The notes under the pieces were generated by a model. The model was given only the letters and a program-made list of their open reading frames with translations, searched no databases and was not told where the DNA came from. Both the position numbers and the translations under genes were made by a program. DNA of 64,000 nucleotides from Zygnema circumcarinatum SAG 698-1b (lineage: Eukaryota > Plantae > Zygnematophyceae). The DNA is taken from the NCBI GenBank assembly GCA_037447605.1, contig CM074804.1, forward strand, positions 2,790,001-2,854,000, written 5' to 3'. Below, piece by piece: positions 8,119-61,922 of this stretch (positions are counted from its first letter, which is position 1; each line of letters opens with the position of its first letter).

Positions 8119-11100
8119 TCAGAGCGCCATCTCGGCCTTGAGCGCGGCGAGCTCGTCGTCCTCCTCCGCCCTCTGCGGCTTCTTCTGCGTCTGCGAAGAA
8201 GCTGCGGCCGCAGAGGGGGCCTTTGTGGGGACGGAGGGCAGCGGCTGCGCAACCTCGCCGGTGGCGGGCTGCAAAAGCTGCTCGTCCAGCTCAAGCCCCT
8301 CCAGCTCCTCCAGCTCCTGAAGCAGCTCATCCTGTAATGGAGAAAGGGAAAAAGGGGAGGACAGGAGAGGGAGGAAGGGAGGGAGGGAGCGAGACAGAGA
8401 GAGAGAGAGAAATTTAGGATGCAGCAAAAGTTGATACGAAGGTAAAGGAAAAGGCGACATTTAGTGGCGGGTTTGGGCGAAGGATGAAAGGGTCGCTACT
8501 AGCTTCTACTAGCTGCGCTTTAGGGCTTGTGGTTGATTTTAGGGTTTCGGATGTCTAGGGATCGAAGGTTGAAATTTCTCCAGAACAATACACGAAACGT
8601 GTAGGTGCGCAATCTCTCTCGCCCACTTTCCGTCTATACTTCAATTGCTACCACCTCACTACAGCCCCTCATTCACCCACTCTCGTCATTATCTCCCACT
8701 TATCTCTCGCACAAAACTTTCCCTTGAGCCCTCTCCCTTGCTTTCTCACCCCTGCCTTCTCTCCTTCCCTCCTCTTCTCCTCCCCCTTTCACCCCTCGTC
8801 CGTGTCTCTTTTCCCTCCCCCTCTCCCCACATTCCCAATCGTCCAAAAGGCTCTCCCACATACACACGCGCACCTTCCAAATACTCACAAGGATACCCCA
8901 TCCTCACCGAGAAAAAATTAAGCGTGGCCCAAACCCGAAAAGACCCATACTGCCATTTACCTCCCCTACCCAGTTTGATAACCTAAAATGCACGTTACAT
9001 AAGACCATACTCAATGTATATATAAACACAACGTAAACAATATATATATACATGAAACAATATAATCTAAAAATGATATATTATATAAAGGGAAATGCTA
9101 TTTTCACACCTTTTTTTGTCGAGATACACACCTTTCTCGCCAGTCAGATATTATTTTAGGGTTTTTAGGGTATTAGGGTTAAAAAAAGGTGTGTATCTAG
9201 ACAAAAGGTGTGTAAATAGCAATTCCCTATATAAATACATATATATATTTATCAGTTTTATCGAGAGTCCTCACCTCATCGAAGTCTGCCGCAGAGCCGA
9301 TCGGCTGTGAGAGCGCGTCTTGAATCTGCTTCATGTTCTCCGTCTGCTCGTTGATCTCGTCCATGGTCTTGTCGACGTCGTCGATGTTCCTGCGAGCCCC
9401 CCCTCAGACTTCAGAACCCTAAAGCCTGCGATGCGTCACCTCAGAAGATGCAGCGACGCAACTCAAACCCTAACTGCTGCTTGTTCCACATAGTGATGTG
9501 CTCTCTCTTTCTCACTCTCTCTCGCACTATCTCGTAGTTCCAATTCTGACTCACATTTGCTTCTGGACGCCCTTCAGAACCTGTGCAGAATCGCGCATCG
9601 CTCCCACCACTTCTACCGTCGCGTTTGCTCCTTCCAACATCACTTCCTGCATCGCACGATTTCAAACCCGCATTTGAATGCCTTTGGAGAAAAACTGCTC
9701 TTGGTGAAATCGATTATGCACAGCAAAACATAACTGAAAAATCAAACTGAAAGCACCAGGAGCGAGAGGAGCGCACCTGATCTTGGAGGCGGAACTGGTA
9801 ATTGCTCAAAGCCTCAATCTGACTCTCATAAAGCTTTTTCTTTTTTAAGCACTGAATAGCAGCTGCGGAAAAGAAAACATAACGTAATTAAGCACCCGGC
9901 ATATGCGCTCGCACCACATCAATTGAACAGACCTAAACTAAATCATCAAACACTTCGTTTTTAAGACCTCTGAAAGTTGATTCCTCTACTTCCATTCATA
10001 CTCATTCACACATTCATTGCTACTCCAGTTCGGAGGAGACTTCAATTTCGTTGTCTGAACAGGGACAAAAGGAAATTTCTATGGTTCTCCACTGCTACAT
10101 TCGCAGAAACAAAGAAAAGTCCAACCCCAAGTTCTGCAACTCGCTGTTTGGAACTCTTTTGACTGCCTCCCTTCAAAGCCTAGCATATTTTCCACTTTAA
10201 TTCTCGACAAAAGGGAAAAACATTAGAAAACCACAACCTGCTGAGTTGAATATTGCTTTGTCTTCCACGGTCAAACGAACATGAAGACGAAATACAGGAA
10301 TGACTCTGGACCTGGAGAGGGAGGGAAAACGAGAAAGAAAGAGGGGGCGAGAGAGGAAGCGGGGGACTGCCCAAAAACCCTAACCCTAAATTCAGGAAGA
10401 CACTCATTAAAGTCCCCGCCATCTGACAATGACGAGCTTCCTCTCTTTGCTCACCCTCCCTCCTCCGTCTCTTTCCACCGTGCAACTCGCTCACCCTCTC
10501 CTCGCGGTATCTCTCCCACTGACTCTCCTTTGACCCCTCTCACCTTCCCGCCTTTCCTCTCTCCCTTTCGTCCAGCCCCTTTTTCTCCAGCTATCTTGCT
10601 ATCTTGTTGCTCCTGCAATTCAGCCTACAGCAGAAAAACCAATACCTCTCTTATTCTTTTGCTTTGTAAATTCCTTTGCTTTCTCCAGCTCCAGCTGAAT
10701 CTTTTTTTGCAAAAACACTTCTTTCTTCTCCAACATGAGCCGCGTCTGCAGTGAACTCAAAAAACAAGGAGAAAAAATCAGTCACCGAAAAACACAATCA
10801 CATGAAAACCCACCTCATATTTCTTGCGAAGAGAAAAAGCACCCAAGCAACCGCTGAAATACATGTGAGCGAGGGAGGAAGGGAGGCAGACAGAGAGGGA
10901 CTGGGAGAGGGAGAGAGAGAGGGAGAGGGGGAGAGAGCGAGCGGGAGAGAGGGAGCGAAGGAAAGAGAGAGACGGGAGACGACGAGGAGTTAGGAAGTTG
11001 GGCATTAAGAGAAAGGTGGGGAAAACGAACGAGTGAAGGAGAGAAAGAGAGGGAGAATGAGTCGACACAGCGAGAGAGAGAAAGAGAGCGAGAGCGACAC

Positions 11101-16100: not shown

Positions 16101-19100
16101 CCTGTTTCAACTTTTCACATATATTATCGCCTTTCTCCTCCCCGCTCCATCTCTCATCTCCTCACAGCAGCTAACAATAACTGCAATTAATTGTCATATA
16201 CGTCTTTTGCAAGAATCATAAAAAACTTCAAACATCCACAGTCACAATCAGAAACCAAAGTGCAAAACATATCCTCCACGCGGTAAAATAGTCCCAGACA
16301 AAAACCATGTCCAACGAGAGGATACTGTCGTGTGCTCTCCGTTTCGAACATGCTTGAAAGTTTTTCCCTCGCCTTGCTGCGACAAAGGGATAAAGAAAAA
16401 AAGCCTAATTTCAGGCCAATGCATTCTAAATCTCATTGGCTCCTAAAAAGGCTGCTACTTGAAGGTTACGTTCCCAGAATCGATTTCAGCTCTCGTCAAC
16501 CTCCCAGGAGACATCAGTCACGCTAGTTATTTGCACAATACCCTCATCCATCCACCCACCCTCTTTAGTCCAGGTCACTCTCTTACATCAAGAGACGAAA
16601 AGGGAAAGAGAGTGGAGGGGGGAAGGGAAGGGGGAAGGGGGCAGCGACGAGGAGAGAGAGGGGAGGGAAGGGGAGTGAAGGGGAGTGAAGGGGAGTGGGA
16701 GAGGGAGAGGGAGAAGCAGGGGGGCGGTGATCTTAGAAAATGTCACCCACCTGATTGATTCATCCAGCACTTTCTCCGCCTCTTTCAAAATTTCCTGCTC
16801 TGCCTGCCAGTGGAGAAGCAGTGCCAAGCATGAAAAATAGGTATACACAATATGGATATGACCAAGTACGCCTTTCTCCAGAACAGAAACCTAAAGAACT
16901 GACTGAACTGAACTGACTGACAGAGAAATTGGCATTCGAATGTGGCCCGCGACCGTTTTTCCCAACAAAGAGTCACAACCACGAGCGATAGTTCTAGCCT
17001 AAGTCACCTCTCACTCGACGAGGTGAAAATTCTTTCAATGACAAAGCAGTTCTCAAACAAGGAAAAAGAACTGGCCGACTACATTTTCATTTTGTCCTGA
17101 TCACCCCCAAAGGGCTTGAAGAATGAAATTTCAAAAAACTCCAAACCGAAGTGTTGTCAGCGTAGCATTGTATTTAACGGTCGCAGGACAAGGAAAAGGA
17201 TGCATAAGTACTGATAAGTGCAACTATACATCTATACTAATAACGAAACCCATGTTCATACTCAAACTCGTGAAACTCTCCTTTTACACAGTTCAAAATG
17301 CGTGCACTCCATCGTTCGACAGCATGACACAAAGACCACGGGCAGACTGATACAGAGTAATAGATAGGAAAAGCCAGAGGACCGGTCCTTGCAAATGAAT
17401 GGCAGTAGGCACTAGATAATACAAGAAACTCAACCTGCATATTCAAATAGTCGTCGTTCATTCCTGTTTCGTCAAGGCCTTCCAGTCCCCTGTGTCCCCC
17501 ATAGAAGCCATTTGAAAAGTCAGCTCTCGTAGGCTTGTCTATTGTTGGTAAATGTGTCGAGAACAATAGAGAGCGTCAGCTATGTGTATCAGGGTCGTTT
17601 TTGACAGTTCATGGGGATCTCTATAGGATGATAATTGGAGTTCCTGAAGAGGATGAAACTAAAAAAACTGCTTTGCCGAATGAATTGCATTCACCAGGCA
17701 TCAAAGTAGTTGTTAAATATCGCTTCACATGCACACACATATGTCTGTCGAAAGCCGAGGAAAAGGGATCAAAAGAGAATGCCGATCTCAATTCAAACTC
17801 ATCATGAGGCACTTCTATCGTTCTGTGTGGTATTCTTCGTTCCCTTACTCAAGTTCCGCACTACTTGTCGGTGTGTGCTGAAACCGGAAATCAACAAACG
17901 ACTGAACTTACTTCCACTGGATGTTATTTTTTGATTTTTTTTCAATGAGTCCTATTCCTTCAAGTACGTTTGTTATATCGTATATCCTCCGTTTTTGCAC
18001 CTGCAAGAAATGCCGCAAAGATGAAAATCAGAGCAGCATTCAGAATTCAAAAAAGCATTGGTAGAATAAATCAGAACGAAGGTTGTAAAAAAAGCAAGCA
18101 ACAAGTCGAAACCAAAGTCCATCCTTGCCAGAACGAAAACAGGTGAGACAACAACACGCAGAGTATTGCTTCCAGCACGTTCAACGTGACTAATTCCAGA
18201 AGCCGCATCACGCAGATGACAATTCTCCTGAAAATGAAAAGTTGAAGAGGAAGGATGAACTTCAAGCAAATTGTCTGAATCATCTCCAACAGATTGAAAC
18301 CATATGATACAGACAAACAGATGCAAGTGAGTATAGCTGACAACGACGCTGGAAGTGTTAAAAGGCATATCAAAGAACGTACATGAAGGGTTTGCGCTGC
18401 TGTGTTAAGGTCCAGCACCCCATCTTCTGAATTTCTTACAAGTTCAATGAATTTTCTAGTCAACAAACCTGGAAAACGGACGAAAAATCAGCATGGCATG
18501 TCAGCTTTGGTCAAAGTGCTCGATGAAAATTGACGAAAACAAACATTGACAAAGATGCTGAAGCATTATAACGAGCACAATCGTCGACAGGTTTTCCAGA
18601 AGAATTTCTCAATTACCAAGAGAATTGTCATAACGGCAAGCTGCTGCTGCATTGCCGGTTGGGGAATCAGTAGACATGGTTGCGGGTTCATTTCCCTCCC
18701 AAGCACCTGCGGCAATCACTAACTGTCAGATGTGTAGCCAAATAGTAGCATTGCCAACAGCACTGCTTCAGTTAGTGGCAAACTACTGACAAAGACGTCT
18801 TCCTGTGGGGGGGGGAAGAGAAGCAAGGCAAAGGGAGATTGGCATTGATGTTCACAGTTCATAACGTGTGTCGTTACACTAGCATCATAATATTCAAATT
18901 TAAGGCACAGCTAAAGTACCTAGCCATTCAAAAAGTCAACAGACTGACATATTGAAAGAGACCTGAAAGATAGTGACTGCTCCTCCCTGGTCGGTTGAGT
19001 TTTCGATTTGGGCGAAACGCAGAGAGAACTGCAGGGCTTGCATCAGAGGCTCCGGCGCTCATATGTCCGGCATTCCAACCTTCCACTTCCATGTTGTGAT

Positions 19101-20283
19101 TGCCACTTCGCTGTAAAAACAAAGGTAACATATAAATGCAGTCAGGAATAGAAGCATCGGCGAATGCCTAAGAAAACGTGCTCAAAAAGTGCCAAATGTG
19201 TACAATTATGCGGAGAGTTTTCATCACAGTCTCGCCCTATCAAGCATAATAACACGAGCGTAGCCCTCGAAAAAGTCTTCTTCCTTTCCTTCAGGCAAGA
19301 AAGTTCCTTGACTTACTGGTGCCAGCTGCGTGTAGGTCTCACCAAAAAGACCTCCATTTATTTGGCGACGAGAAAGATCCTGCAGGTTCCAGAATAAACG
19401 AGCGACTCAACACTTTGCCAACAGAAAAAGGTCTCTGGACAATCATATTAATTAGGCAAGCACATTCACCCTCAAACAATGGTAACAGCAAATAGCAAGT
19501 TGAACTGATGTGCATTCTTTTGACAAGAAACGGCCATCTTTAGATGAAAAAAAACTCAATAATTGTGTTTCCATCTTCTTCCCTTCGCATCTATCAGCCT
19601 TTAAGGAAATTCAGAAACACAATCAAGCAAATACTTGAAAGGTGCACAAAGAAGCAATGCAATGCCGCTAGACAATTGACACGTACAATCCATAAAAACG
19701 ATCTACGGACTTTCCATTTCTACTGCATATACAACTCTAGTGACAAAACAACGAGCATGTTAATGTCAAATATTTTAAGCCTACATCAAATCAAGATTAT
19801 CTACCTCAAACCCCATAATTCCATTCCATTAACACCTTAACTATTAACTGCCTCAAGGAATAGAAAAGCGTTAAATCGCATAATTCACATATTTGCAGTG
19901 CCACGACAGAATAGACTACCTATCCACCTCACCATTATCATCGACATCAGTATCACATCCTCATCATTTTTGTCGCAGTCATTATCATCATCATCATTAT
20001 CATCAACACTCACAGAAAATTTCGAAACAAGAGCTTCTTCATCAGGAGAACCGATGGTTCTCGAATGGCTGCTTGTTGCGCCGCTAGGATCGCGGAACCT
20101 GTGGAACTCGTCCGGTGATGCAAACGATGGCCTTGAATGAGTGAAAGCAACATGATGATGATATGGAGGAGAGGAATATTGCGCTACAGATGGAGTAACG
20201 ACGTGAGCGATCTGCTGCTGCTGCTGCAATGCAGGTGTTAGGGGTCTCTTTCCCGAAGAAGTTCCAGCCATGGCTGCCTTCAT
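13183..20283 (-). CDS. E2F: E2F transcription factor (E2Fa/b-like), multi-exon. Last exon inferred as 13183-13310.
   Basis: CRYDNSLG|[22 protein letters not shown]|[29 protein letters not shown] (DNA-binding domain); [14 protein letters not shown] and LEVPDPDE (marked box); [20 protein letters not shown] (RBR-binding motif). Confidence 0.93.
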
Positions 20284-21063
20284 GCAGGAACTCCTGCAAC
20301 TAATTAGCTTTTCTAAAAAAAAACAAGATCCATAACCAAGACTGGGGACCTGCTGGCACAACACTGTGAACAGGAGCGAGTCTCCATGCTTCCTGCTCCT
20401 CGCTTGGAACCCCTAATTACTGCCAACTACGAAAATTCCGAGATTTATGACTCATATCATGCAGCACAGGTCGAGACGCTGGACACTGGGAGTTCCCTCT
20501 CGGAACAAAAACCATTGCAGGCTTCCAAAACTTCAGAAAAGTTGCAGTAGTTGCACAGCTGGCAGAGAGGTGAAGCCATGTCCTGCAAATTTTCCTTGGT
20601 ATTTCAATGGCAGCTGCAAAAAGAGCTACAATATCCTGGTTGCGGAGGGGAATGGCCGCCATATTTGACTGCCATGACTGCCTGCAAACCGGCTCGTGGA
20701 GGAGCCTCCAGCTGCCTCCAGGGAGGCAAGGTCCTTCCCTTCAGCACTTTGAATCCGACATTCCCAGTCTCGCGCCTTCCGATTTTATTCACAAATCTGG
20801 TCCAAGCCCATTTCCTCCAATTCCGCAATCGTCTACAAAACGTTTTCCAGTCAGAAAGTTTCGTCCATTGTATTTTCAACATTGGTCCATTTCAGGGGAC
20901 GAACGATTTAAGGGTTCACGAAGGCGGCCTTTTCACGGCATGCCTTGCCCAAACCTGTAAAAACTATTTCATCTGCCCAGAACTGCTTTTCGTAAAAACA
21001 ACTACGCATGCAACACCAAACGTACGGCCTGTCCCATGTTGTGTGTACAGTACAGTACAAAAG

Positions 21064-23047
21064 GGAAAATTCTATTCTCACACCTTTTTTGCCTACACAC
21101 AGACCTTTTTTCGCCGGGCAGGTTCTATTTTAGAAAATCGAAAAATGCTTTTTTAACACCTTTTTTGTCTATACACACTCCTTTTTCCGTTGGGCAGATT
21201 TTACTCCTGACTTTTTTTTGGAGTGAAAAACAATATCGGCTTGCCCGAATCCACTGAAGCGGAAGATCCGTCCGCCACGAGAATCGTTCGCGGGTGTGCG
21301 TCCCTTCACAGGCATTGAATCCCGTCGACTAACTCGCAGATCGCAACACGGCAGATCACCGTTCGATCTGCAGTCGGGCTCTGTCCCAGCGAATGGCACG
21401 TGCCCACGTGCCCCACCAATGCCGGCTGGCACGTGCTAGAGCGCGCGTCCCACGGCCCGAGATCTCCACAAAATATGAGCTTGACTGGCCAGCCTGCGGC
21501 GGCTCTCCAACTAACAGCCAACACCATCTCCCAAGTGTACCCTTAATCACGTGGCAAATTATAATTGGTCCAAGCATTCAATGTACGGTATTTCGCCTTT
21601 CCTCGAGGAAAATTCTATTCTCACACCTTTTTTGTCTACGCACAGACCTCTTTTCGCTGGGCAGGTTTTAAAATAGACAAAAAAGGAACACACCTTTCAC
21701 ACCTTTTTTTTTTCACCTTTTTTTTCACATCTTTTTGGAATCGATACACGCTACCAGTCCTGAGCGGCCGAGCGCCGTGAGACCTTTTTCTGTCGGGCAG
21801 ATTTTACTCCTTATCATTTATTTTCAGAGAAAAAAATATCTGCCTGCCCGAATCCGTTCGCAGCGGAAGATCCGTCCGCCACGAGAATCGTTCGCGGGTG
21901 TGCGTCCTTCACACGTGCATTGAATCTCCCCCGTCGACTAACTCGCAGATCGCAACACGGCAGATCACCGTTCGATCAGCAGCCGGGCTCTGTCCCACGT
22001 GTCCCACCCAAGCCGGCTCCAAGGACCGTACAAAAGGCGTACGCCCGCAGCTTCGAGGAAAGTCAAAAAACGTAATAATTAAAGTTGAGTGCCTGTACCA
22101 ATCACAGTTTGCCACGTCTAAAAAGAGCACGCGGCAGATGGTGATTGATTCAAGCTCGCAATGTAAGGAATTTAGACCTTCCTCGAAGCTGCGACCGTAC
22201 GAATTGTGTACGGTCCTCGAGCCTGCTCGGGTGGGACACGTGGGCGTGTGCCATTCGCTGGAACCGAGCCCGGCTGCCGATCGAAAGGTGATCTGCCGTG
22301 GTGTGATCTGCTCTAGAATCGACGGTGTATAGTTTCTGCACGTGTGAAGGACGGCCACCCGCGAACGATCTCGTGGCGGACGGATCTTCTGCTCTGAGTG
22401 GATTCGGGCAGGCCGATATTTTTTTCTTTGAAAAAAACAAGAAAGGGTAAAATCTGCCCGATGGAGAAAGGTGTGTATCGATTTCAAAAAGGTGGGAAAA
22501 AAAAGGTGAAAAAAAAAAGGTGAGAAGGTGTGAAAGGTGTGTTCTTTTTTTGTGCTATTTTAAAATCTGCCCGGCGAAAAGAGGCCTGTGTGTAGACAAA
22601 AAAGGTGTGAGAATAGAATTTTCCTTCCTCGAAACTGTGACCGTACAGTTTTTGTATGGACGGTTTGAGCCGGATTTGGCGGGACACGTGGGCCCGTGCC
22701 ATTCGCTGGGACCGAGACCAACTGCAGATCGAACGATGATCTGGCGTGGTGCGATCTGCGAGTTAGTTGACGGCGGAGATTCACCGCACGTGTGAAGAAC
22801 GCACACCCGTGAACGATCATGGGGCGAACGGATCTTCCGCTCCTAGCGGATTTGGGCAAGCCGATTTTTTCCTCTCCAAAAACAAAATCAGGGGTAAAAT
22901 CTGCCCGACGGAAAAAGGTTTGTATCGATTCCAGAAAGGAATGAAAAAAGCATTTTTCGTTGTTAATCCTTTTTTTTCTAAAATAGAACCTGCCCGACGA
23001 AAAAAGGTCTGTGTGTAGACAAAAAAGGTGTGAGAGTAGAATTTTCC
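21064..23047. mobile_element. Non-autonomous long-TIR (Mutator/Foldback-like) element, outer copy, 8-bp TSD TACAAAAG
   Basis: Ends GGAAAATTCTATTCTCACACC.. and ..GGTGTGAGAGTAGAATTTTCC. TACAAAAG lies at 21056-21063 and 23048-23055. The inverted arms are ~370-420 bp. Confidence 0.9.
21607..22624. mobile_element. Second copy of the same family nested inside the first, 8-bp TSD TTCCTCGA
   Basis: Same TIR ends. TTCCTCGA lies at 21599-21606 and 22625-22632. The ~450-bp inverted arms surround a ~115-bp spacer. Confidence 0.9.
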
Positions 23048-23236
23048 TACAAAAGTCCAAATCCTTTTCGTACCGTACCGTACACAAGTGATGTACAACT
23101 ATTGCTCGTGGTTTCTGCAGGATGTACGGATATCGACTGTGCGGCCGATTCCCGTGGGGTCGAGGTGCAGGGCGGCCCCTCCGCTCCGCGAAGTGGGAGA
23201 AAGGGGAAAGGGAGAAGGGGGAGTGGGGCGGCAGCC

Positions 23237-26200
23237 ATGGGAGCTGCAGCTTCGAGGAGCCGCCATGGGGGCGGGGAGGGGAGCTCGGAAGACTTGCCTC
23301 CCTTACCGCCGCCATGGCACCGAAAAGCCTCAGTGCGAGGAATTGGTATTACAGTTGGGCTGGCGTGGCCGGACCCTCCGCCGCCCGTTGGTGTGTGAAT
23401 CTCTCTCTCTCCCTTTTTCTCTCTCTCTCTTTTCCCATTTCCCTATCTCCCTCTCCCTCTCCCTCTGCCTCTCCCTCTCCCTCTCCCTCTCCCTCTCCCT
23501 TCCTCTCCCTCCCTCTCCCTCTCCCTCTCCCTCTCCCTCTCCTCTCCCTCTCCCTCTCCCTCTCCCTCTCCCTCTCCCTCTCCCTCTCCCTCTCCCTCTC
23601 CCTCTCCCTCTCCCTCTCCCTCTCCCTCTCCCTCTCCCTCTCCCTCTCCCTCTCCCTCTCCCTCTCCCTCTCCCTCTCCTTCTCCCTCTCCCTCTCCCTC
23701 TCCCTCTCCCTCTCTCCCTCTCCCTCTCCCTCTCCTCTCCCTCTCCCTCTCCTCTCCCTCTCCCTCTCCCTCTCCCTCTCCCTCTCCCTCTCCCTCTCCC
23801 TCTCCCTCTCCCTCTCCCTCTCCCTCTCCCTCTCCCTCTCCCTCTCCCTCTCCCTCTTCCTCTCCCTCTCCCTCTCCCTCTCCTTCTCCCTCTCCCTCTC
23901 CTTCTCCCTCTCCCTCTCCCTCTCCCTCTCCCTCTCCCTCTCCCTCTCCCTCTCCCTCTCCCTCTCCCTCTCCCTCTCCCTCTCCCTCTCCCTCTCTCCT
24001 CTCTCCCTCTCCCTCTCCCTCCCTCTCCCTCTCTCCCTCTCCCTCTCCCTCTATCCTGCTCTTTTCCAACCTCTCCATCCTCTCCATTCGTTTATTTTCA
24101 CTTTTTCATTTATCTTTTTCAATCGTTCTTACAGGAAAAAGCGCCTCCTCTCTATCTTCAGTGAACAACGTCTCTTCTTTTTCACCGCAAGATGCCACTT
24201 CCAACCAACCACCTTCGAGCGAGACCGTCCACTCCAAGCCTGCGACTTCAGCAGATTTCTCGTCAACCAATGCCCTCTCAGCAGAGCAATTCTACCAACA
24301 CCTGGCCATATCAGCATCAGATTGTCCCACTTTCCACTCCGCCCATATATTAAACCTCCCTCCGGAGTGTCAGCTGGCGATCCTCGGAAAGCTTCAGAAG
24401 CTCGCCGATTGGTGCAGCTTCAAATCTGTGTGCAAACAGTTTCGTAATTTGGCAAATTTTTCCGTTCAAAGCATCGAAATCATGGAACAGCAGGAGTTGA
24501 CAGCGATCCGTCTGGCCAATGGCGTGAAGGAACTAAAGAACTTGGTGGATCTCCGACTTGCTTCCACAAGTGTGAACGATTCGGAGGACGGTTTAATTTG
24601 CGCTCTCGCCCTATGCTGTCGGCAGTTGCGAACGCTCCATTTGGGAAGGTTCTGGAACTGGGTAAGTTTCCTAGCAAGCTTTTGGTTTTGGGTTTTTTGT
24701 TTGTGTGGCTTTTAGGGCTTTTCCGAATATGGGGCCTGAGTGAACTGTTTTATTGTTTAAAGTTTAGTGCTTTCGGGTTTCAGGATTTTGGTTGTTCATG
24801 AGGTCTTCAGATGCTTGTAAAGCTCAGCAACTAAACTTGTGATGTTGGGGATGTTGGGTTTGGGTTTTGGGTTTTGTGGTTTGGTTTGTGGTTTGTGGAG
24901 TTCAGAGCCCATACACCCCTTATGACAATGTTGCATTTGCACTGTTGTTTTTCCAATGTCGAAATTTAGAAGAAGTTGAGATTGTATGGGAAGGAAGTGA
25001 TGGCCCGGCTCCCTCATCTCTATGGGAGCTCCGGCATTTGAGGAGATTGGTGGCTGGTGATTGGCCGGCATTTGATCGGCTTCCTCGGGAAGTGGCCCAA
25101 TTATCGTCCTTGAAGGAGCTTGAAGTTTTTGGGGCAGAAGTGAAAGAAATTTCACGGGAGTTTTGGAGGCTCACCAAGCTTGAGAAGTTAGTATTGGAAT
25201 CTGTGTTGAAGGTATGTAACATTTGGCGCAGATTCTTTTGTAGAGAATAATCTATAAACACACACCTATCCTTCCATTCCTCTCTTCCTCCTATACTTTC
25301 GCTCTCTTCTTTTCTCTTCCCCTCTCCTCACTCCTTGTTCTCTTTTCCCTTCTTTTCCGCTCTCTTTTCTTCTCTCTCTTTTTCGCTCTCTCCTCTGTCC
25401 ACTTTCCTTCCTCTCCTCACTCGCTCCCTCCCCCCCTTCCCCCGCCCCGCCCATCTCCCCCTCTTTCCTCCTCTCTCTCCCTCTCCCACCCCCTCTTCCC
25501 CTCCTCCCCTCCTCCCCTCCCCCCCATCCCCCCTCCCACCCCATCAACCTAACCATTCCCCATTCCCCCCCATCCCCCCGCCCTCCCTCCCCCATCCCCC
25601 ACATCCCTCTCCCCTCATCGCATCCCCCTTTCTCCCCGTCCCCCTCCCCCTGTCCCCTCGGCCCCCCGTCCGCCGCCACCTCCCCCCCTCCCTCCATCCC
25701 CTATCCCCGATGCCCCATCCCCATTCCTCCCTCCCCCCATCCCCCATTCCCCTCCCCNNNNNNNNNNCCCATTCCTCCCTCCCCCCATCCCCCATTCCCC
25801 TCCCCCTTCCCCTCCCCCTTCCCCTCCCCCTTCCCCTCCCCTTCCCCTCCCCTCCCCTCCCCCCCCCTCCTCTCCCATGCCCTTCACCGCCTTGGCGACC
25901 TTTGTTGTCCTTCGCTCCTCTTCTAATTCAGTTTTTTACGTGCGCTATTTGCAGATGGGCGACGTGGCTAAAAATGTCGGTGCCTTGACAAATTTGCGCC
26001 ATTTAGCAATTGAAAATTTGGGTAAACCGAGTAAGGCAAGCCAGGTACATCTTGCATCCTCTTTAGGACAGCTAGGAAAACTCGAAACCCTAAAAATTAT
26101 TAACTGTTTTGGGCCCCTTTCTCCCCATTGGAAATCCGTCCAAAAATTTCAACACTTGACGGAATTTTTCCTTTCAATACACAACTGCTCGTCGGTTCCC

Positions 26201-27376
26201 GACATTTTTTGGCAAAGTGATTGGAGGAATACTCTCACTTCGCTGACGATAGAGGGTGAAAAATTTGAGTTGCTACCCGACTCAATCTTTTTTCTGCTGC
26301 CCAATTTGAGAGTTTTTCGAGCGATCAACTGCGTCGCAGTCAATTGGCTTTCTCCCCAAATCTCCAATTTGTCGAAATTGGAAGAATTGGAATTAGATGG
26401 AGGATTTGTTTCCTTGCCCGAGTCGATAAGCCGCTTGAATCTGCTAAAGAAATTCAGAATTGGACCCAGTACGCCAATTTTAGAGCTTCCTGATATGTTC
26501 GGAACCTTAGGCAAGCTTCAGATAGTTTCATTAGACTGCCCGAATCTGCTCTCGCTTCCCAGAAGTTTTTTTGAGCTGCCCGAGCTGGAGGAACTCAGGC
26601 TTGTCACAAAGTCACTCCGTCTGCTGCCCGAGTCCCTAAAACTTTTGACAAAGTTAACGACGATTGAAATTTTGAGTGAGGAGGTTACTTGGCTTCCTGT
26701 AGCGCTTGGCTCATTAGAGAACCTGCAAAAGCTTTCCATTTCTGGACCGCAAATTGGCTATCTCCCGGCGAGTTTAGGAAATTTGAAAAATTTGAAAACA
26801 TTGACTTTGACCAACTGTAAGGGACTGTTCGCTCTTCCCTCGAGTCTTGGGGACTTGGCCTCTCTCCGGAGCCTGGAGTTGGACTGCGAAAAAATTCGGT
26901 CATTGCCCCCAACCTTGGGCAGCTTAAAGAGTCTCACCCGGCTGCTGATTTTGAACGGCGCGAGAATTTCGGAAATTCCGGAAGAAATTGGCAATTTGAG
27001 TCGGCTTCGGAGGCTCGCATTTGTGAACTGTGTTTCGATTTCGAGTCTTCCGCGGAGTATCGGCTCTTTGTTCAATTTGGTGAGGCTGGACATCCTCATG
27101 TGCACGTCCTTGGCATCGATTCCGGATTCGATTTGTGGGCTCAAGAACTTGGCGTTCCTTGTGTTACAGTCTCTATGGAGCTTGCATTCCCTTCCAGTTT
27201 GTCTCAACGGAACGATGGCATTGACGACGTTCCATGTTCAAGACTGCCCCAAACTGGACGTGGTGCCTCTGTCGTTGAGTCGCTTGAAAGGGATGAGAGA
27301 TGCGGTGGGGACGGAGGGAGAGAGAGAGGGAGAGGGAGGGGGAGGGATGGAAGTGGCAAACAGGAAAATAGAATAG
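23237..27376 (+). CDS. F-box + multi-LRR protein with predicted N-myristoylation. Exons 23237-23390, 24135-24661, 24906-25211, 25955-27376.
   Basis: Start gcagccATGG gives MGAAAS. F-box-like [25 protein letters not shown]. More than 15 LRRs of the LPxSLGxLxxLxxLxL type. Splice phases are compatible. Confidence 0.85.
23450..24050 (+). repeat. (CTCTCC)n hexamer satellite in intron 1 of the F-box/LRR gene
   Basis: Direct reading; it produces the spurious LPLP/SPSP/EGEG ORFs. Confidence 0.95.
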
Positions 27377-28084: not shown

Positions 28085-31832
<3,748 letters not shown>

Positions 31833-32894: not shown

Positions 32895-35800
32895 CTACTT
32901 CCTCCGCCCCACCCTCCTCTCGTTCGGGTTCCTCTTCCCTCTCAGCAGCAGGGCCGGACTGCTCCCGTGATTGGTTGCACGGCTTTTCGAGTCCGCCCCA
33001 TGAAACCACGTGTCAAAGTCTGGAGAAAGTACATCCACCTGCGTGCAAAAAAAAAATAATAATAAATTAATTAATTAAAAGTAAATACGTAATGCTAACT
33101 GATGCCCAGTGTTTGAGTAACTCCCACAGTACACTATATATAGTATACTCTCTCTCTCCCTCTCCCTCTCTCTCCCTGAGAAAACCTGCATGGTTGTCAT
33201 GGTTTTCCATACTGTCGTTGGAGGCAAAGACCTAAACGCGAACTATGACAACGATGAAGAACATAAGACCAAAGCACCTATAAAGCACTTCTCAGTACTG
33301 TCCATCCGTCCGTCAGTCCACCCGCCCCGCCCTCCCTCCCTCATCCCCCCTTCTCCCTCCCCCTCCCATCTCTCCTCTCCCCCTCCCTCCGTTCCCTTCC
33401 CCCCCCGGGCCCCCTCTCCCCACTCTCTCCCCCACCCCCCCTTCCCTCCTNNNNNNNNNNCTCCCCCACCCCCCCTTCCCTCCTCCCATCCCCCCCCCCC
33501 CCTCCCCTTCTCTCCCCCCTCCCACCCCCCCTCTCCCTTCCATCCCATCCCCCCTTCCTTCCCCTCCCTCCCTCCTTCCCTCCATTCTCCCCACCCTCCC
33601 GCTTCCCCTCTCTCTCCTCCTTCTCCCTCCCTCTCCCCCACTCCTCCCTCTCTCCCTCTCCCTCCCTGTAAGCTCACCTCCCCCGCCTTCTTTCTATATG
33701 GGCGGTTTGGAAGCTGGTCTTCTCTCAGAACGGGGTTCAGGGCCGCTCCCTCCCGCCCTCCTTTAGGGAGAGGCAGCGAATACTGCCATACACAAAACAA
33801 AACAGACTGTCAAAACCGAGCATGTATGACCGAAGAAAAGAGACAATCTATTGACTTAGACAAAAGAAGAAAAGAGAGTCGGAAGGAGAGCGAGGGCGAG
33901 AGAGGCAGAGAGAAACAGAGAAAGGGAGAGAAAGCGAGAGAGGAATAGAGAGAGAGGGGAGAGAGTGACCCGTGTTCCACGCAGGTTGAAGCGGCGCGGC
34001 ACTCCCGCCTGCAAGGTTCCGTCCTCTCCCACAGTGACGGCCACCCTTCGGAGGGTACCGCCGTTGCCGCAGCTCTGACAAAAGAGGCGGCCCGACTGCC
34101 GGGACACGGCGGCACAGGCGGTACACTTCAGGGCCCACCTGAAGGGAGAGGGAGGGGGAGGATGGGGAGAGGGAGAGTGGGGAGAGAATGTTAGAGGAGT
34201 GGAGGGAGAGGGCGAGGAGGAGAGGGAGATAAAGGAGAGGGAGAGGAGGGCGAGAGGAGAGGAGGGAGAGGGAGAGCAGGGGAAGAGGCTGTTAGAGAGG
34301 ACGAGGGAGACGGAGAGAAGGGAGAGGCTGTGAGGAGATGGACGGGAGAGGAAGTGCAGAGGGAACCTGTTAGAGGAAGGGTGGAGAGGGAGAGGACGTT
34401 AGAAAGGAGTTGAGGGAGAGGAAGAGGAGTGAGAGGCGGTTACAGGAGGGAAGTGGGGGGGGAAACGAGGTGGGACAGGTTAGACGAGGGAAGGAGGACG
34501 AGGGAGCTGGGAGAGTGGCTGTGAGGAGGCGGAGGGGAAGGAGAGGAAAAGTACCCTACGACGAAGAACCAACATTTAACAAGTTTATAAAACTCCACAC
34601 CTGTGCAGCTCTCTTATGCGAACTCCGTCGACAGAAACGAGGCGCAACCCCATTTGGATTATGACGTTCTGCATTGCAAAATCTGAAGTCATAATCGCCA
34701 CTGAAGACTCCCACAAAGGCTGTAAGTTCCAGCTGGCTTCACTCTCGTCTTCCCCTCCCTCTCCCTCGTGAGAGACTACCCCCTCCGACACACTCACATG
34801 CTCTCCCTCCCCATCCAGCTCTTCTCGCTCTCTCTCATCGTCCTCTATCTGCATAAGTCCCCCTGTGATTCCTGCTTCCATATCTCCTTCTACTCCTTCC
34901 ACACCGTCATCTAGATATTCCACTTCTTCAATTTCTTCCTCAAGATGGCCCCCCTCTACGTCGACCTCTGCCACTTCCGTCTCCTCTCTATCTTCCACCC
35001 CACCGCTTCCGATATTTTCGAGCTCTAGCATTCCATCGATCCCCTGTTCTCCTACCATATGGCTCTTTGCTTTCTCCCTCTCCTCCTCTTCGTTTCTGAT
35101 GTCTGTCTGCCCCTCCCCCCCCTCTTTCCTTTCTCCTTCCCTCACTCTCTCCTCTCTCCTAGCTTTCCTTCGCAAGTAGTTCCTCCTTGTAGTCCGACAT
35201 ACCGCCTTCTGCCACTCGTCTCCCTCCCCCTCGCCCTCTTCCTCTCCCTCTCCCTCCTCAGTCGCATCAGCGCGAGAGGCATTAACGCCCACCGCCACAT
35301 TCGACTTCCCTTCCACATTCACAACTACTGGCCCTCTCCCTCTCCCTCTCCCTCTCCCTCCCCAACTCCCCCTCCCTCTCCCCCGCCCCCCCCTACTGCT
35401 CCCCTTCCCCCTCCCTCCACCTCTCCATCCCTCCCCCTTCATTTCCCCTTTCCCCAAACCGCCTTCCACCTTTTCCACGCTCACTCCCTCTTCACCCCCA
35501 TCTCTCTTCTCTCCCTCCTCCCTTTTTTCCCTCCCTCCCTCCCCATCACCAACCTCCTTCTCACCTTCCTCCCGCTTTTCCTTCACACTATCCTCCTTCC
35601 TCTCTCCACTAGCTTTCCACCCCTCTATCTCCGCTAACTCGACCTCCCTCTCTCCCTCCCCGACCAATGGACTCACTCCCAAAATCCTCGAACCTCCAGC
35701 TCCTCTCCCTCCTCTCCCTGCTCTCCCACCTCTCCCTCCCCTCCTCCCCCCTCCTCCTCTCTCTCCCTCTCCACCCTTTCTCGTCCCATCGTCCCCCACT

Positions 35801-36903: not shown

Positions 36904-36975
36904 GGGTGTTTGGTCTAGTGGTATGATTCTCGCTTCGGGTGCGAGAGGTCCCGAGTTCGATTCTCGGAACACCCC
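36904..36975 (+). tRNA. tRNA-Pro: tRNA-Pro(CGG)
   Basis: 72 nt. Acceptor stem GGGTGTT/AACACCC, anticodon arm CTCGC-TTCGGGT-GCGAG, T arm CCGAG-TTCGATT-CTCGG, followed by a downstream T-run. Confidence 0.97.
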
Positions 36976-38448: not shown

Positions 38449-38757
38449 TCAGGACCGCTTCCTCCCCGCCCCCTTCTCCTTCCTCGCGCCTCGCGAAGGC
38501 GCCGAAGCAGAAGCCGCAGCCGCAGCCGGAGCCGGAGCCTGCGGAGGCCTGGCAGGCTGCCAAGACAGCGGATGCTGGTTGAAGTAGGACCAATCAGGAA
38601 GCGCCACGACCATGGTCAGTACGGAGCCGCCCAGAAAGAGCAGCATCATTGTGCGGTATGATTGGAGGAGGTAGCCGGCGAAGAAGGCGACAAAGGCAGA
38701 GGCGACGATCGTCCATTGCATCAGCTGCTCGGAGAGCTTCTGGCCCTGCCAGTCCAT
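38449..38757 (-). CDS. SPCS1: Signal peptidase complex subunit 1 (SPC12); intronless CDS, probable 5'UTR intron
   Basis: MDWQGQKLSEQLMQ, two hydrophobic segments, then LPDWSYFNQHPLSW. Confidence 0.93.
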   Translation of the reverse strand: MDWQGQKLSEQLMQWTIVASAFVAFFAGYLLQSYRTMMLLFLGGSVLTMVVALPDWSYFNQHPLSWQPARPPQAPAPAAAAASASAPSRGARKEKGAGRKRS

Positions 38758-39497
38758 GGCGGAGGGAAGGAGGAAGGAGGAAGAGTGGGGGGTGGCGATG
38801 GAGGGGGGGGAAGAGTGAGGGAGGGACGGGGGATGCTTGATACCCTGAATTACTTTATGAGGGAGGCGAGAGAGGAGAGAGTGAGTGGGATGGGGGAAGG
38901 AGAGGGAAGCGGAGGGCGTGAGTGTGGGGAGGGGAAAATAGAGGGAGATAAGGGGGAGAGGGAGAGCGGAGGAGAAAGTTAAGAGAGAAGGGGGAGAGTG
39001 GAGGACAGATGGGTAGTCGCGGCGGTGGGTAGAGAGAGAAAATGGCAGGTGGAGAGGGACAGCCCGGGAACCAGAAGTCGAAGGACAGGCAGAAGGCGGA
39101 GTTATCAGCGGCGAGGAGCGAGAGGCGAAGGGCCGGACAGGGCGGGGGCCCTCCACGCAGCGCAGCGCTGACGGGAGCAGGGACGTGCACCGGCTCGACC
39201 CTTCGGGCACACTTAACTTTTTTAGTTGAGGGAGGGAGGACTGCAGACAGAGACCAAAGTGGTTTGTTCGTACAAGCAGCTTGTCAACTCGTTTGACATT
39301 TTTTCCTTCACAATTGTTGGCTGTTGTTGATCACGCTCAGCACGCTTGACGCATAGTCGACATTTTTCGATTAAGTCAAACGCAGGCCGTGGGGCAAACT
39401 AAGCATAAACGTGTAGGAATGCTTTGTTTGCTTTGTTTGTTTGTTCCATCCCTGCGTTTTGAAGGAATTTAAGCATCCACTAGATGGAGGGGTAAAA

Positions 39498-39779: not shown

Positions 39780-39851
39780 GGGGTGTTCCGAGAATCGAAC
39801 TCGGGACCTCTCGCACCCGAAGCGAGAATCATACCACTAGACCAAACACCC
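39780..39851 (-). tRNA. tRNA-Pro: tRNA-Pro(CGG), identical to the copy at 36904
   Basis: Exact reverse complement of 36904-36975. Confidence 0.97.
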
Positions 39852-54943: not shown

Positions 54944-56750
54944 GTCAAGGATTTCCAAGTCCCCCTTTGTGAGCTTAAGTTTCCTGTTCAACTTATAATA
55001 AGGTCTGATGTTGTTGCAGTGCATTAGGGTTCAGAAGACGGTGTGGGAGACCTCTCTGTGGAGAGAGGGTGTAAGGGAGAGGCTTTCATTTATGGTCGGT
55101 TGGTCGAACAGGATCTGTAGAAGCAGCTAGGTGGACTATTACTGTATACCAGTTTTGACCGTGGGTGTCGTGACATTTACATTCGTTTCCCTTTGAAACT
55201 GTCACTATTTCATTGATTCTCTTAGAATTAGGGTTCGGTCTTTCAGGGTTCAGGGTCACACTTGCCTTATCAAGCGCTGTACGAGTGCGACAGGTCGTCG
55301 GTCCGTTAAGGTTTAGAGTTCAGGAGTTAGGATTCAGGCGCGCCTTGTTTTAGTGCACCGAGTCCACTTTACAGGAAACTGTCTGCTTGTAGCAGCTAGA
55401 GCCTATGCCTTCTCTTCATTGTGGGAGCAAACGTACCTGGTTTTAAGCCTGTTCTGGATTGTGGTTTGCAATTTTTCGTTTTGACAACTCTTTGTTTGAC
55501 GTCGTTATTTTTTTGTTTGAACTGAGCAAGTATTGTGTAGTATATGCACTTCCGAAAGACCCAAAAACGCACCCTTATGTAATGAAAATGTAAAATGTAA
55601 TGACATTTCCCTTGGCTTGGAGAAGATGTCCATAAATCCAATCCAAGGTTTGAAAATTTGAAAAAGAAATACTTCGATCCAATATTTAATAAGGGAAATG
55701 TCCGTCCAACATTGGTAGGGAGAGGGTGGGGGAAGAAGGGAGGGAAGTAGGGGCAGAAGGGGAGAGGCAGTGGGGTAAAGGAAATATGGGGAAAGGAGGG
55801 AAGCGGGAGGAAGATGGGATGACGGAGAGGAAGGCGGAGAGAGAGAGCGAATTGAGAAGGGAGAGGGAAGAGGGAGAGGGAGGCTAGGGGGGAAAGAAAG
55901 GGGGAGGGGGAAGCGGGGGGGGGGGGGGGNNNNNNNNNNGGGGAAGGGGAGATTGGAGGGGAGGGAGGGGGAGAGGGGGGAGTGGGGAAGGGGGAGGGAG
56001 TAGGGGAGGGCCCCGATGGGGGGGAGGGAGAACGGGAGGGGAGAGAGGGGGAGAGGGGGAAGGGAGATTGGAGGGGAGGGAGGGGGAGATTGGAGGGGAG
56101 GGAGGGGGAGAGGGGGGAGGGAGTGGGGAAGGGGGAGGGAGTGGGGGAGCCCCGATGGGGGGGAGGGAGAGGGGGAGGAGAGAGGGGGGGAGAGAGGGAG
56201 CTAGTTGGAGTGGAGTGGGAAGACGTGTGGCGCGAGGGGGATGGGGGAGGGGCAAGGGGGGAGAAGGGGGAGAAGGGGGAGAAGTGGGGGGGAAGGGGGA
56301 GGGAGGGGGGGGGATATGGGTGAGGGGTAGATGGGAAAGGGGACGGAGGAGAGGGAGAGAGTGTGGGAAGAGGGAGAAAGTGAGGGGGACAAGGGGAGGG
56401 GGAAAAGAGAGAGGTAGAGGGGAAACGGGAGAGAGAGAGTGGAGGGAGGGAGAGGTATAGGATGAGGGAGAGGGAGAGAGGGAGAGCAACTGCAAAGCAT
56501 GCAACGGCGCCCGCACCAGCCACATTTGAACTTGGGGATGAGCTTTTAAAAATGTGACGAAAATTCAGCAATTGCTACTTTACAAACTGTCATGTACAGT
56601 TGTCAGTTGCTCACAACAGCTCAACAATTCTACCGCACCGCAGTCAGAAGCAGCTAAACCACAGTTAATAACAACGCAAAAACTTCAAAAAAGGAGGACC
56701 TGTAATGGCACTTCTGACGAGCGTCCGTCCATCAAAACTGCATGTTCTCC

Positions 56751-61023: not shown

Positions 61024-61922
61024 GGCGCCCCCCTCCTCGCGCTGCTCCCTCCCTCCCCTCCCTTCCCGTGCTTCCCCCGAGCGCCCCCTTCCCCCTGCCA
61101 AGTCGAGGCCCCGCGCCGCGCCGGCCGTGCCGTGCCGTGCGTCCGTACAGCGCGCTGCCGCACTTCGTTCGTTCGCCCTGTACGGCCGGACCGGTCCGGT
61201 CAGGTCGGCTGCTGCCGCCGCCTGTCGCGAACAGGCCCCGCTCCGCCCCGCCCCGCCAGCGGCTCCACCAGGGAGGGAGGGCGGGAGGGCGGGAGGGTGG
61301 AGTGCGAGGCCCTCAGGGGGGGGCCCGCTGGAGCTGCCACGCGGCGGCCGCGTCCCTGCGCCACGCGGCAGTCGACCCGCGACGCGCCGTGACTGCCGGG
61401 CCGGCCGGGCGGGGTTCGAACCGCGCTCGCCCGCCCGCCAGAACAGGCCGCACGGGACGGCGCGGGGCGGGACCTCTCGCTCCCTCCCTCGCCCTGGAGT
61501 GTCGCCGCAGGGTGGCCAGTCAGCGCTTTTTCAACAATCGAAAAGGCGCGTCACGTTGCGAGCTTTCCTCCCCGGCAGCGTAGTCCAATGCGCCCTCGCC
61601 ACGTGGCGATTTTGAGCGTCCGCCGTGGCGGCAGGCTGCCGCCCCCGCGATCCGGACGCGTGCCAGCGTGGCACCGCGACCGCGTGCGGCGGCCAGGCTT
61701 TATCCTTTCGAGTCATGTGGCGCCGCCCTATTGGCATACGCGATCGCGTTCTGTGGAGCTTTCCACGGAGCGTTCCACCACGCGCAGACGTGGCAGCCAC
61801 GTCGGCGCCACGTCGACCAAGCCCGCCTTGCTGGAGCCTGAAACCCGCCCGCTCCCCATCAGCATCCACAGCCCTTCCTCCTGCAAACCTGGTGACGTCC
61901 CGGGCCGGACGCTGCAGTAGCC

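Follow-up and report, generated by a model that had tools for sequence, protein, structure and literature searches.

The question raised by the locus described here is how a palindrome of about 2 kb, with two arms on each side, came to lie between two divergent genes of an alga. The locus is part of a 64,000-nucleotide stretch of the genome of Zygnema circumcarinatum SAG 698-1b (GenBank assembly GCA_037447605.1, contig CM074804.1, positions 2,790,001 to 2,854,000 of the forward strand). This whole stretch was analysed and is called the window below, and all coordinates are positions within it. We found that the palindrome very probably consists of two non-autonomous foldback DNA transposons from a single family, one nested in the other, which were moved by cut-and-paste insertion. 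Nested and self-inserted small DNA transposons are already well described, and the locus is a well-preserved instance of such an event.

The outer element (21064-23047) has the ends GGAAAATTCTATTCTCACACC...GGTGTGAGAGTAGAATTTTCC and is flanked by the 8-bp target-site duplication TACAAAAG, which can be read directly at 21056-21063 on the left and identically at 23048-23055 on the right. The left TACAAAAG is followed by GGAAAATTCTATTCTCACACCTTTTTTG, and the near-perfect inverse of this sequence terminates at 23047, where TACAAAAG comes again. Inside lies a second element (21607-22624, 1018 bp) with the same ends. Its left duplication, TTCCTCGA at 21599-21606, consists of letters belonging to the outer element and is followed by the identical 28-nt terminus; the inverse terminus closes the element at 22624, and TTCCTCGA is read again at 22625-22632. 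Over the four ends of both elements 111 of 112 bases of the 28-nt terminus are identical. It occurs four times in the window (three exact occurrences and one with one mismatch), solely at the four element ends, against a chance expectation of 0. A blind search for inverted termini of 14 nt with an exact flanking direct repeat of 7-10 bp recovered only the outer and the inner pairing, and nothing in 10 shuffled windows; the crossed pairings of ends (21064-22624 and 21607-23047) had no flanking duplication. The elements thus have defined termini common to all ends, as expected of non-autonomous class II cut-and-paste transposons, and the duplications agree in eight of eight bases at both levels. 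The inner target together with the first four bases of the terminus (21599-21610) forms a perfect 12-bp palindrome, TTCCTCGAGGAA, which probably arose by chance because the target starts with TTCC and the terminus with GGAA.

Nesting was also evident when the inner copy was removed. The outer element without 21607-22632, that is without the inner copy and one TTCCTCGA, is 958 bp long and can be aligned from one end to the other with the inner copy of 1018 bp, with 700 of 923 aligned bases identical (76%). The alignment runs unbroken through the restored target, where GGTATTTCGCCTTTCCTCGAAACTGTGACCGTACAG of the outer copy matches GGAATTTAGACCTTCCTCGAAGCTGCGACCGTACGA at 22166-22201 of the inner copy, and the restored site itself aligns with 22180-22187. 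Since both copies are colinear across the restored target, the outer element is an ordinary member of the family interrupted by a sister. A preliminary description of this DNA had proposed the insertion of one family member into another with an exact 8-bp duplication at each level, and both of these points are borne out.

The four arms, each of about 430-450 nt, align with a mean column identity of 79%. Each starts with the 28-nt terminus, which lies inside a unit of about 76 bp composed of GGAAAATTCTATTCTCACACC, TTTTTTG, YCTACACACAG, ACCTTTTTTCG and CCGGGCAGRTT. In the outer copy this terminal unit is tandemly doubled, and three 14-bp CACCTTTTTT repeats come after it in the inner copy. The arm core is better conserved: the two left arms are the same over one stretch of 46 nt, and a further stretch of 68 nt is 97% identical. 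The outer left arm (21064-21430) consists of the terminus (21064-21091), two of the units (about 21064-21139 and 21140-21215) and the conserved core with its G-boxes. Its innermost part of about 90 bp has been lost, and according to the alignments its place is occupied by about 118 bp of unrelated sequence (21431-21548) that has no counterpart in any other arm. The adjoining segment 21549-21598, which ends at the insertion point, is the most central stretch of the right half of the outer element and is homologous to 22118-22179 of the inner copy. The outer right arm (22633-23047) closes with the terminus at 23020-23047, which carries the one mismatch. A 32-nt insertion at 21750-21781 was found solely in the left arm of the inner copy.

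The inner copy is a near-complete palindrome up to its midpoint, with 468 aligned pairs that are 88% complementary around a centre at 22122/22123. The inner ends of the arms had been placed at about 22055 and 22178, and this has to be corrected, as both positions lie inside the palindrome. The centre region (22098-22148) carries an exact CCAAT-N9-CCACG box at 22098-22116 on the plus strand and a decayed mirror copy with two mismatches at 22130-22148. The predicted fold of the inner copy reaches -697 kcal/mol, compared with -305 for mononucleotide shuffles, and includes 433 pairs out of a maximum of 509; this is a foldback structure. For the whole nest -1297 kcal/mol was predicted, compared with -614 for shuffles of the same kind, and in this composite fold outer arms pair with outer and inner with inner. 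The long inverted repeats starting with G that had been noted before are present, with arms of about 430-510 nt. The elements have no coding capacity. No Pfam match was obtained for nine long open reading frames (ORFs) scanned in and around the element, in agreement with the earlier statement that it encodes no transposase; the largest ORF of the element (192 aa) had no relative in the protein collection, and none of ten ORFs in and around it was present there. Neither were tRNA genes found in the arms, and the single Rfam match of the arms, to MIR5048, scored 23 bits against a threshold of 160 and is noise.

Beside the two elements, the window contains one related miniature inverted-repeat transposable element (MITE). 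It is 138 bp long (9090-9227), has the termini GGGAAATGCTATTTTCACACC... and is flanked by TATATAAA at 9082-9089 and 9228-9235, again with eight of eight bases duplicated. Its ends align with the approximately 76-bp terminal unit of the foldback family. All three insertions in the window that have this group of termini therefore show duplications of 8 bp. The interior of the MITE contains three telomere-like TTAGGG(T) units (about 9155-9180). Exact-pattern scans of a metagenome collection with the terminus and with a conserved 20-mer of the arm core gave no match, and no transposase was seen among the long ORFs of the window. MITEs and simple repeats have been described as the main repeat classes of Zygnema genomes (PMC11096116). 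We also considered a third, older level of nesting, suggested by the resemblance of GTACAAAAGG at the outer target to 22027-22036 of the inner arm, and rejected it as chance: local alignments of the restored outer empty site with both elements were no better than those of shuffled sequences, of which 71 of 200 and 140 of 200 scored as high.

Recent activity of the family had been proposed, and this holds in part. Over the first 70 columns of the arms, the two arms of one element are 96% and 94% identical, compared with 87-89% between elements, and farther into the arms identity drops to 64-88% (differences of 12-36%). Among the 128 bases of the four 28-nt termini and the two 8-bp duplications there is one difference. 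By a simple Poisson bound of our own calculation, which assumes that the termini equalled the family consensus at insertion, decay since insertion amounts to at most about 3% per site. As termini and duplications are intact at 127 of 128 positions and the interiors show 64-88% identity, the insertions appear younger than the diversification of the family. The insertions thus look young, as had been suggested, but the copies are only about 76-80% identical to each other and are thus diverged subfamily members rather than recent twins.

Which transposase moved these elements can be judged from their ends. A Mutator-like transposase is the most likely one, with about an even chance in our estimation. 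Long inverted repeats made of tandem subterminal units, GG or GGG termini and the promoter-proximal site are all Mutator-like traits. The arms, at about 430-510 nt and with their subterminal repeats, exceed the inverted-repeat length of at least 100 bp expected of Mutator-like elements (MULEs), and the 8-bp duplication of all three insertions lies at the lower edge of the range for MULEs (about 9 bp, range 8-11). Several points weigh against this assignment. No autonomous partner was seen in the 64-kb window and the superfamily is read from the ends of the elements alone; the duplications of plant MULEs are usually 9 bp long; and an 8-bp duplication is a hallmark of hAT elements. Duplications of 8 or 9 bp are known, on the other side, from the MULE Muta1, the 145-bp repeats of which are built of subterminal tandem units (PMC5225508), and duplications of 8-10 bp from the Tm1 Mutator/Foldback elements (PMC3169594).

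That the transposase was instead of the Merlin type (IS1016-like) or a hAT transposase is a possibility that we regard as rather unlikely. GG termini, 8- or 9-bp duplications and inverted repeats of 24-462 bp also define Merlin, a further point against a Mutator-like driver, and the GGAAAA and GGGAAA termini, the 8-bp duplication and the arms of about 440 nt agree with all three of these hallmarks (PMC8101967). However, the blastp survey in the same study gave no significant matches in Streptophyta, and the one Repbase entry is from Selaginella (PMC8101967), and Merlin by itself seems unlikely. A hAT transposase would be consistent with the 8-bp duplication at three of three insertions, and is quite improbable. 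Inverted repeats of hAT elements are short (about 10-25 bp) and usually start with YARNG, whereas the ends found here start with GGAAAATTC and GGGAAATGC and the repeats extend over hundreds of bp.

Whichever transposase acted, the history of the nest might be reconstructed as follows. An element of about 0.96 kb would have inserted into TACAAAAG, in the spacer of about 0.9 kb between the divergent E2F and F-box/leucine-rich-repeat (LRR) genes, and a diverged sister of about 1.02 kb would then have inserted into TTCCTCGA, which lies some 60 bp rightward of the centre of the first palindrome. A transposase acting in trans would recognize the conserved 28-nt terminus, probably also the tandem units of about 76 bp, and excise the element; an 8-bp staggered cut of the target and repair fill-in would then create the duplication. 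Two or more transpositions would have occurred at this locus; if the completed nest travelled as one unit, there would have been one elsewhere and one here. According to this last possibility the nest formed elsewhere and was transposed here as a composite via the outer termini, and the outer-first order would not hold at this site. Tomato and Arabidopsis have mobile, amplifying MULEs that carry two inverted-repeat pairs (PMC3310237), and the two duplications are equally perfect, with neither event datable as the later one at this site. It counts against the order proposed above that the locus alone cannot tell insertion of the inner copy in place from movement of the finished nest. However, just two insertions at one place are the simplest history and a second copy of the composite is not known, and we consider a composite move rather unlikely.

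The location of the nest between divergent E2F and F-box/LRR genes, as given in the preliminary description, agrees with Pfam matches on both sides, for which exons were searched one ORF at a time and not as spliced models. On the left, an ORF on the minus strand (18074-18466) matches the E2F/DP winged-helix domain (PF02319, E 1.3e-05). Its score of 25.2 bits is just below the Pfam cut-off of 25.7 because residues 1-30 of the ORF alone match. An upstream ORF (19888-20364) is probably the first coding exon of the E2F gene. On the right, the plus strand encodes an F-box exon (24161-24712; Pfam F-box-like, E 2.4e-07) and LRR exons (24867-25247 and 25877-27373; Pfam LRR_14, E 2.6e-36). The best relative of the 499-aa LRR ORF shows about 33% identity, and Closterium is among the top matches. 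An ATG about 190 bp from the element had been taken as the start of this gene; it is present at 23237 in good context and may plausibly be the start codon of the F-box gene. Between this ATG and the F-box exon lies a CT-rich microsatellite of about 650 bp (23400-24052; CTCTCC/TCTCCC units, about 54 copies of a 12-mer), which probably sits in an intron or leader. Exact runs of ten N, which are scaffolding gaps, were found at 2936-2945, 25758-25767, 33451-33460 and 55930-55939, one of them within the F-box/LRR gene region. Elsewhere in the window two tRNA-Pro(CGG) genes lie in inverted orientation about 2.8 kb apart (36904-36975 on the plus and 39780-39851 on the minus strand); between them, on the minus strand, is a gene with an SPC12 domain of signal peptidase (38452-39210).

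If the nest were absent, about 0.9 kb would separate the E2F and F-box/LRR genes, and the nest triples this spacer. Ten of the 27 CACGTG boxes (G-boxes) of the window lie within the 2 kb of the nest, where shuffles predict about 0.2, and one of the ten is conserved without change in each of the four arms. The outer copy carries an exact CCAAT-N9-CCACG box at 21550-21568 on the minus strand, in the homologous place to the box at the centre of the inner copy. An influence of the nest on the flanking genes is conceivable, through small RNAs derived from its hairpin or through promoter boxes supplied to the divergent promoter. The very strong predicted fold of the composite, the ten CACGTG boxes, the exact CCAAT-N9-CCACG boxes at 21550 and 22098 and the tripled spacer are consistent with such an effect. 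However, the only Rfam match is noise and the boxes may serve the element rather than the host, and an effect on the neighbouring genes appears doubtful. Similar boxes occur outside the nest as well: four CACGTG boxes lie within 130 bp at 31647-31774, and a stretch of 65% GC at 61585-61734 contains two convergent CCAAT-N9-CCACG-type boxes about 130 bp apart together with a G-box.

The recurrence of TTCCTCGA in the inner copy had been interpreted as self-targeting of the family, an interpretation that we do not follow. The occurrence at 22180 is the homologue of the target in the outer copy, and its complement at 22053 is the mirror image in the other arm. The motif recurs because the two copies are relatives, and its recurrence is silent on any preference. 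A more general form of the idea is that the family prefers itself, or hairpin-prone DNA near a foldback centre, and would form nests above chance and, from these, multi-arm composites. The inner copy did insert close to the centre of the first element's palindrome, at a distance of about 60 bp, and for some rice MITE families frequent self-insertion has been reported (Jiang and Wessler 2001, as reviewed in PMC5172404). However, one event cannot demonstrate a preference, and homology accounts for the motif. Moreover, the targets TACAAAAG, TTCCTCGA and TATATAAA have no motif in common, the sequences on either side of the outer element bear no relation to the family by the shuffle comparison given above, and nests would also be expected from clustering in promoters or from hops over short distances by nearby copies. 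We therefore hold self-preference to be unlikely.

That the palindrome is an assembly artefact, or an inverted duplication that arose by recombination rather than transposition, is highly improbable: chimeric long reads are a known source of palindromes and 10-N gaps are present elsewhere in the window, but the arms differ by 12-21%, and their interiors by 12-36% with many indels, where artefactual palindromes are near-identical, and so the palindrome was not made by assembly; the termini and both duplications are moreover exact, and the element itself is free of gaps.

As a transposon nest, the locus adds three clean 8-bp insertions to the record of GG-ended foldbacks, be they Mutator-like or Merlin. 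It also places ten G-boxes and two boxes of the endoplasmic reticulum stress response element (ERSE) type in the divergent promoter of the cell-cycle regulator E2F, and the nest might offer a straightforward case for testing promoter modules carried by transposons in an alga closely related to the land plants. Three wider readings, for which we made one common estimate, have a small chance at best: that this family, together with the wider group of GG-ended foldbacks with 8-bp duplications in this alga, prefers the centres of existing foldbacks for insertion and so seeds composites with tandem terminal inverted repeats (TIRs), that there is a large active radiation of Merlin in the plant lineage, or that elements of this kind spread a CCAAT-N9-CCACG/G-box module. 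If the first were true, nests would be the first step toward multi-arm composites, the origin of which has been left open for plant MULEs. If Merlin were the driver, its radiation in the plant lineage would be large and active.

Several known systems resemble the nest. "Foldback" describes a shape and not a transposase family, and elements of this shape duplicate 9 bp in Drosophila FB and 7 bp in Galileo. With these foldbacks proper (Drosophila FB, Galileo of the P superfamily, and the plant elements FARE, Hairpin and SoFT) the elements described here share near-total inverted arms, internal tandem repeats, a tiny loop and strong hairpin potential, but no sequence relationship. With Merlin (Feschotte 2004, as summarised in PMC8101967) they share the terminal 5'-GG, duplications of 8-9 bp and repeats of up to several hundred bp, whereas Merlin was almost absent from the plant lineage in the survey (PMC8101967). 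No transposase of the IS1595 type was seen among the long ORFs of the window. Tandem subterminal units and full-length palindromes are, to our knowledge, not typical of Merlin.

MITE multimers of rice and maize (Jiang and Wessler 2001; PMC5172404) are similar in that members of one family are nested by independent insertions with a duplication at each level. According to that review, multimers make up over 10% of 6,600 rice MITEs, and self-insertion is frequent in some families (PMC5172404). These multimers, however, are of Tourist and Stowaway type, with duplications of 2-3 bp and short repeats, while the nest is made of foldbacks of about 1 kb with 8-bp duplications, in an alga.

The MULEs with tandem TIRs of tomato and Arabidopsis (PMC3310237), Tm1 of Meloidogyne (PMC3169594) and the Muta1 derivatives of Aedes (PMC5225508) likewise have long repeats of tandem units, are non-coding, show four-arm layouts and duplications of 8-10 bp, and insert near genes, although the 8 bp found here in three of three insertions differ from the usual 9 bp of MULEs and no MURA-type transposase was seen in the elements or among the long ORFs of the window. 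Nested insertion was named by Ferguson and Jiang as one possible origin of tandem-TIR MULEs, which could not be documented because inner duplications were missing (PMC3310237). Unlike in those elements, the inner pair of repeats described here has an exact 8-bp duplication and therefore represents a plain nested insertion, so that this locus documents a four-arm structure built by nested insertion with both duplications intact.

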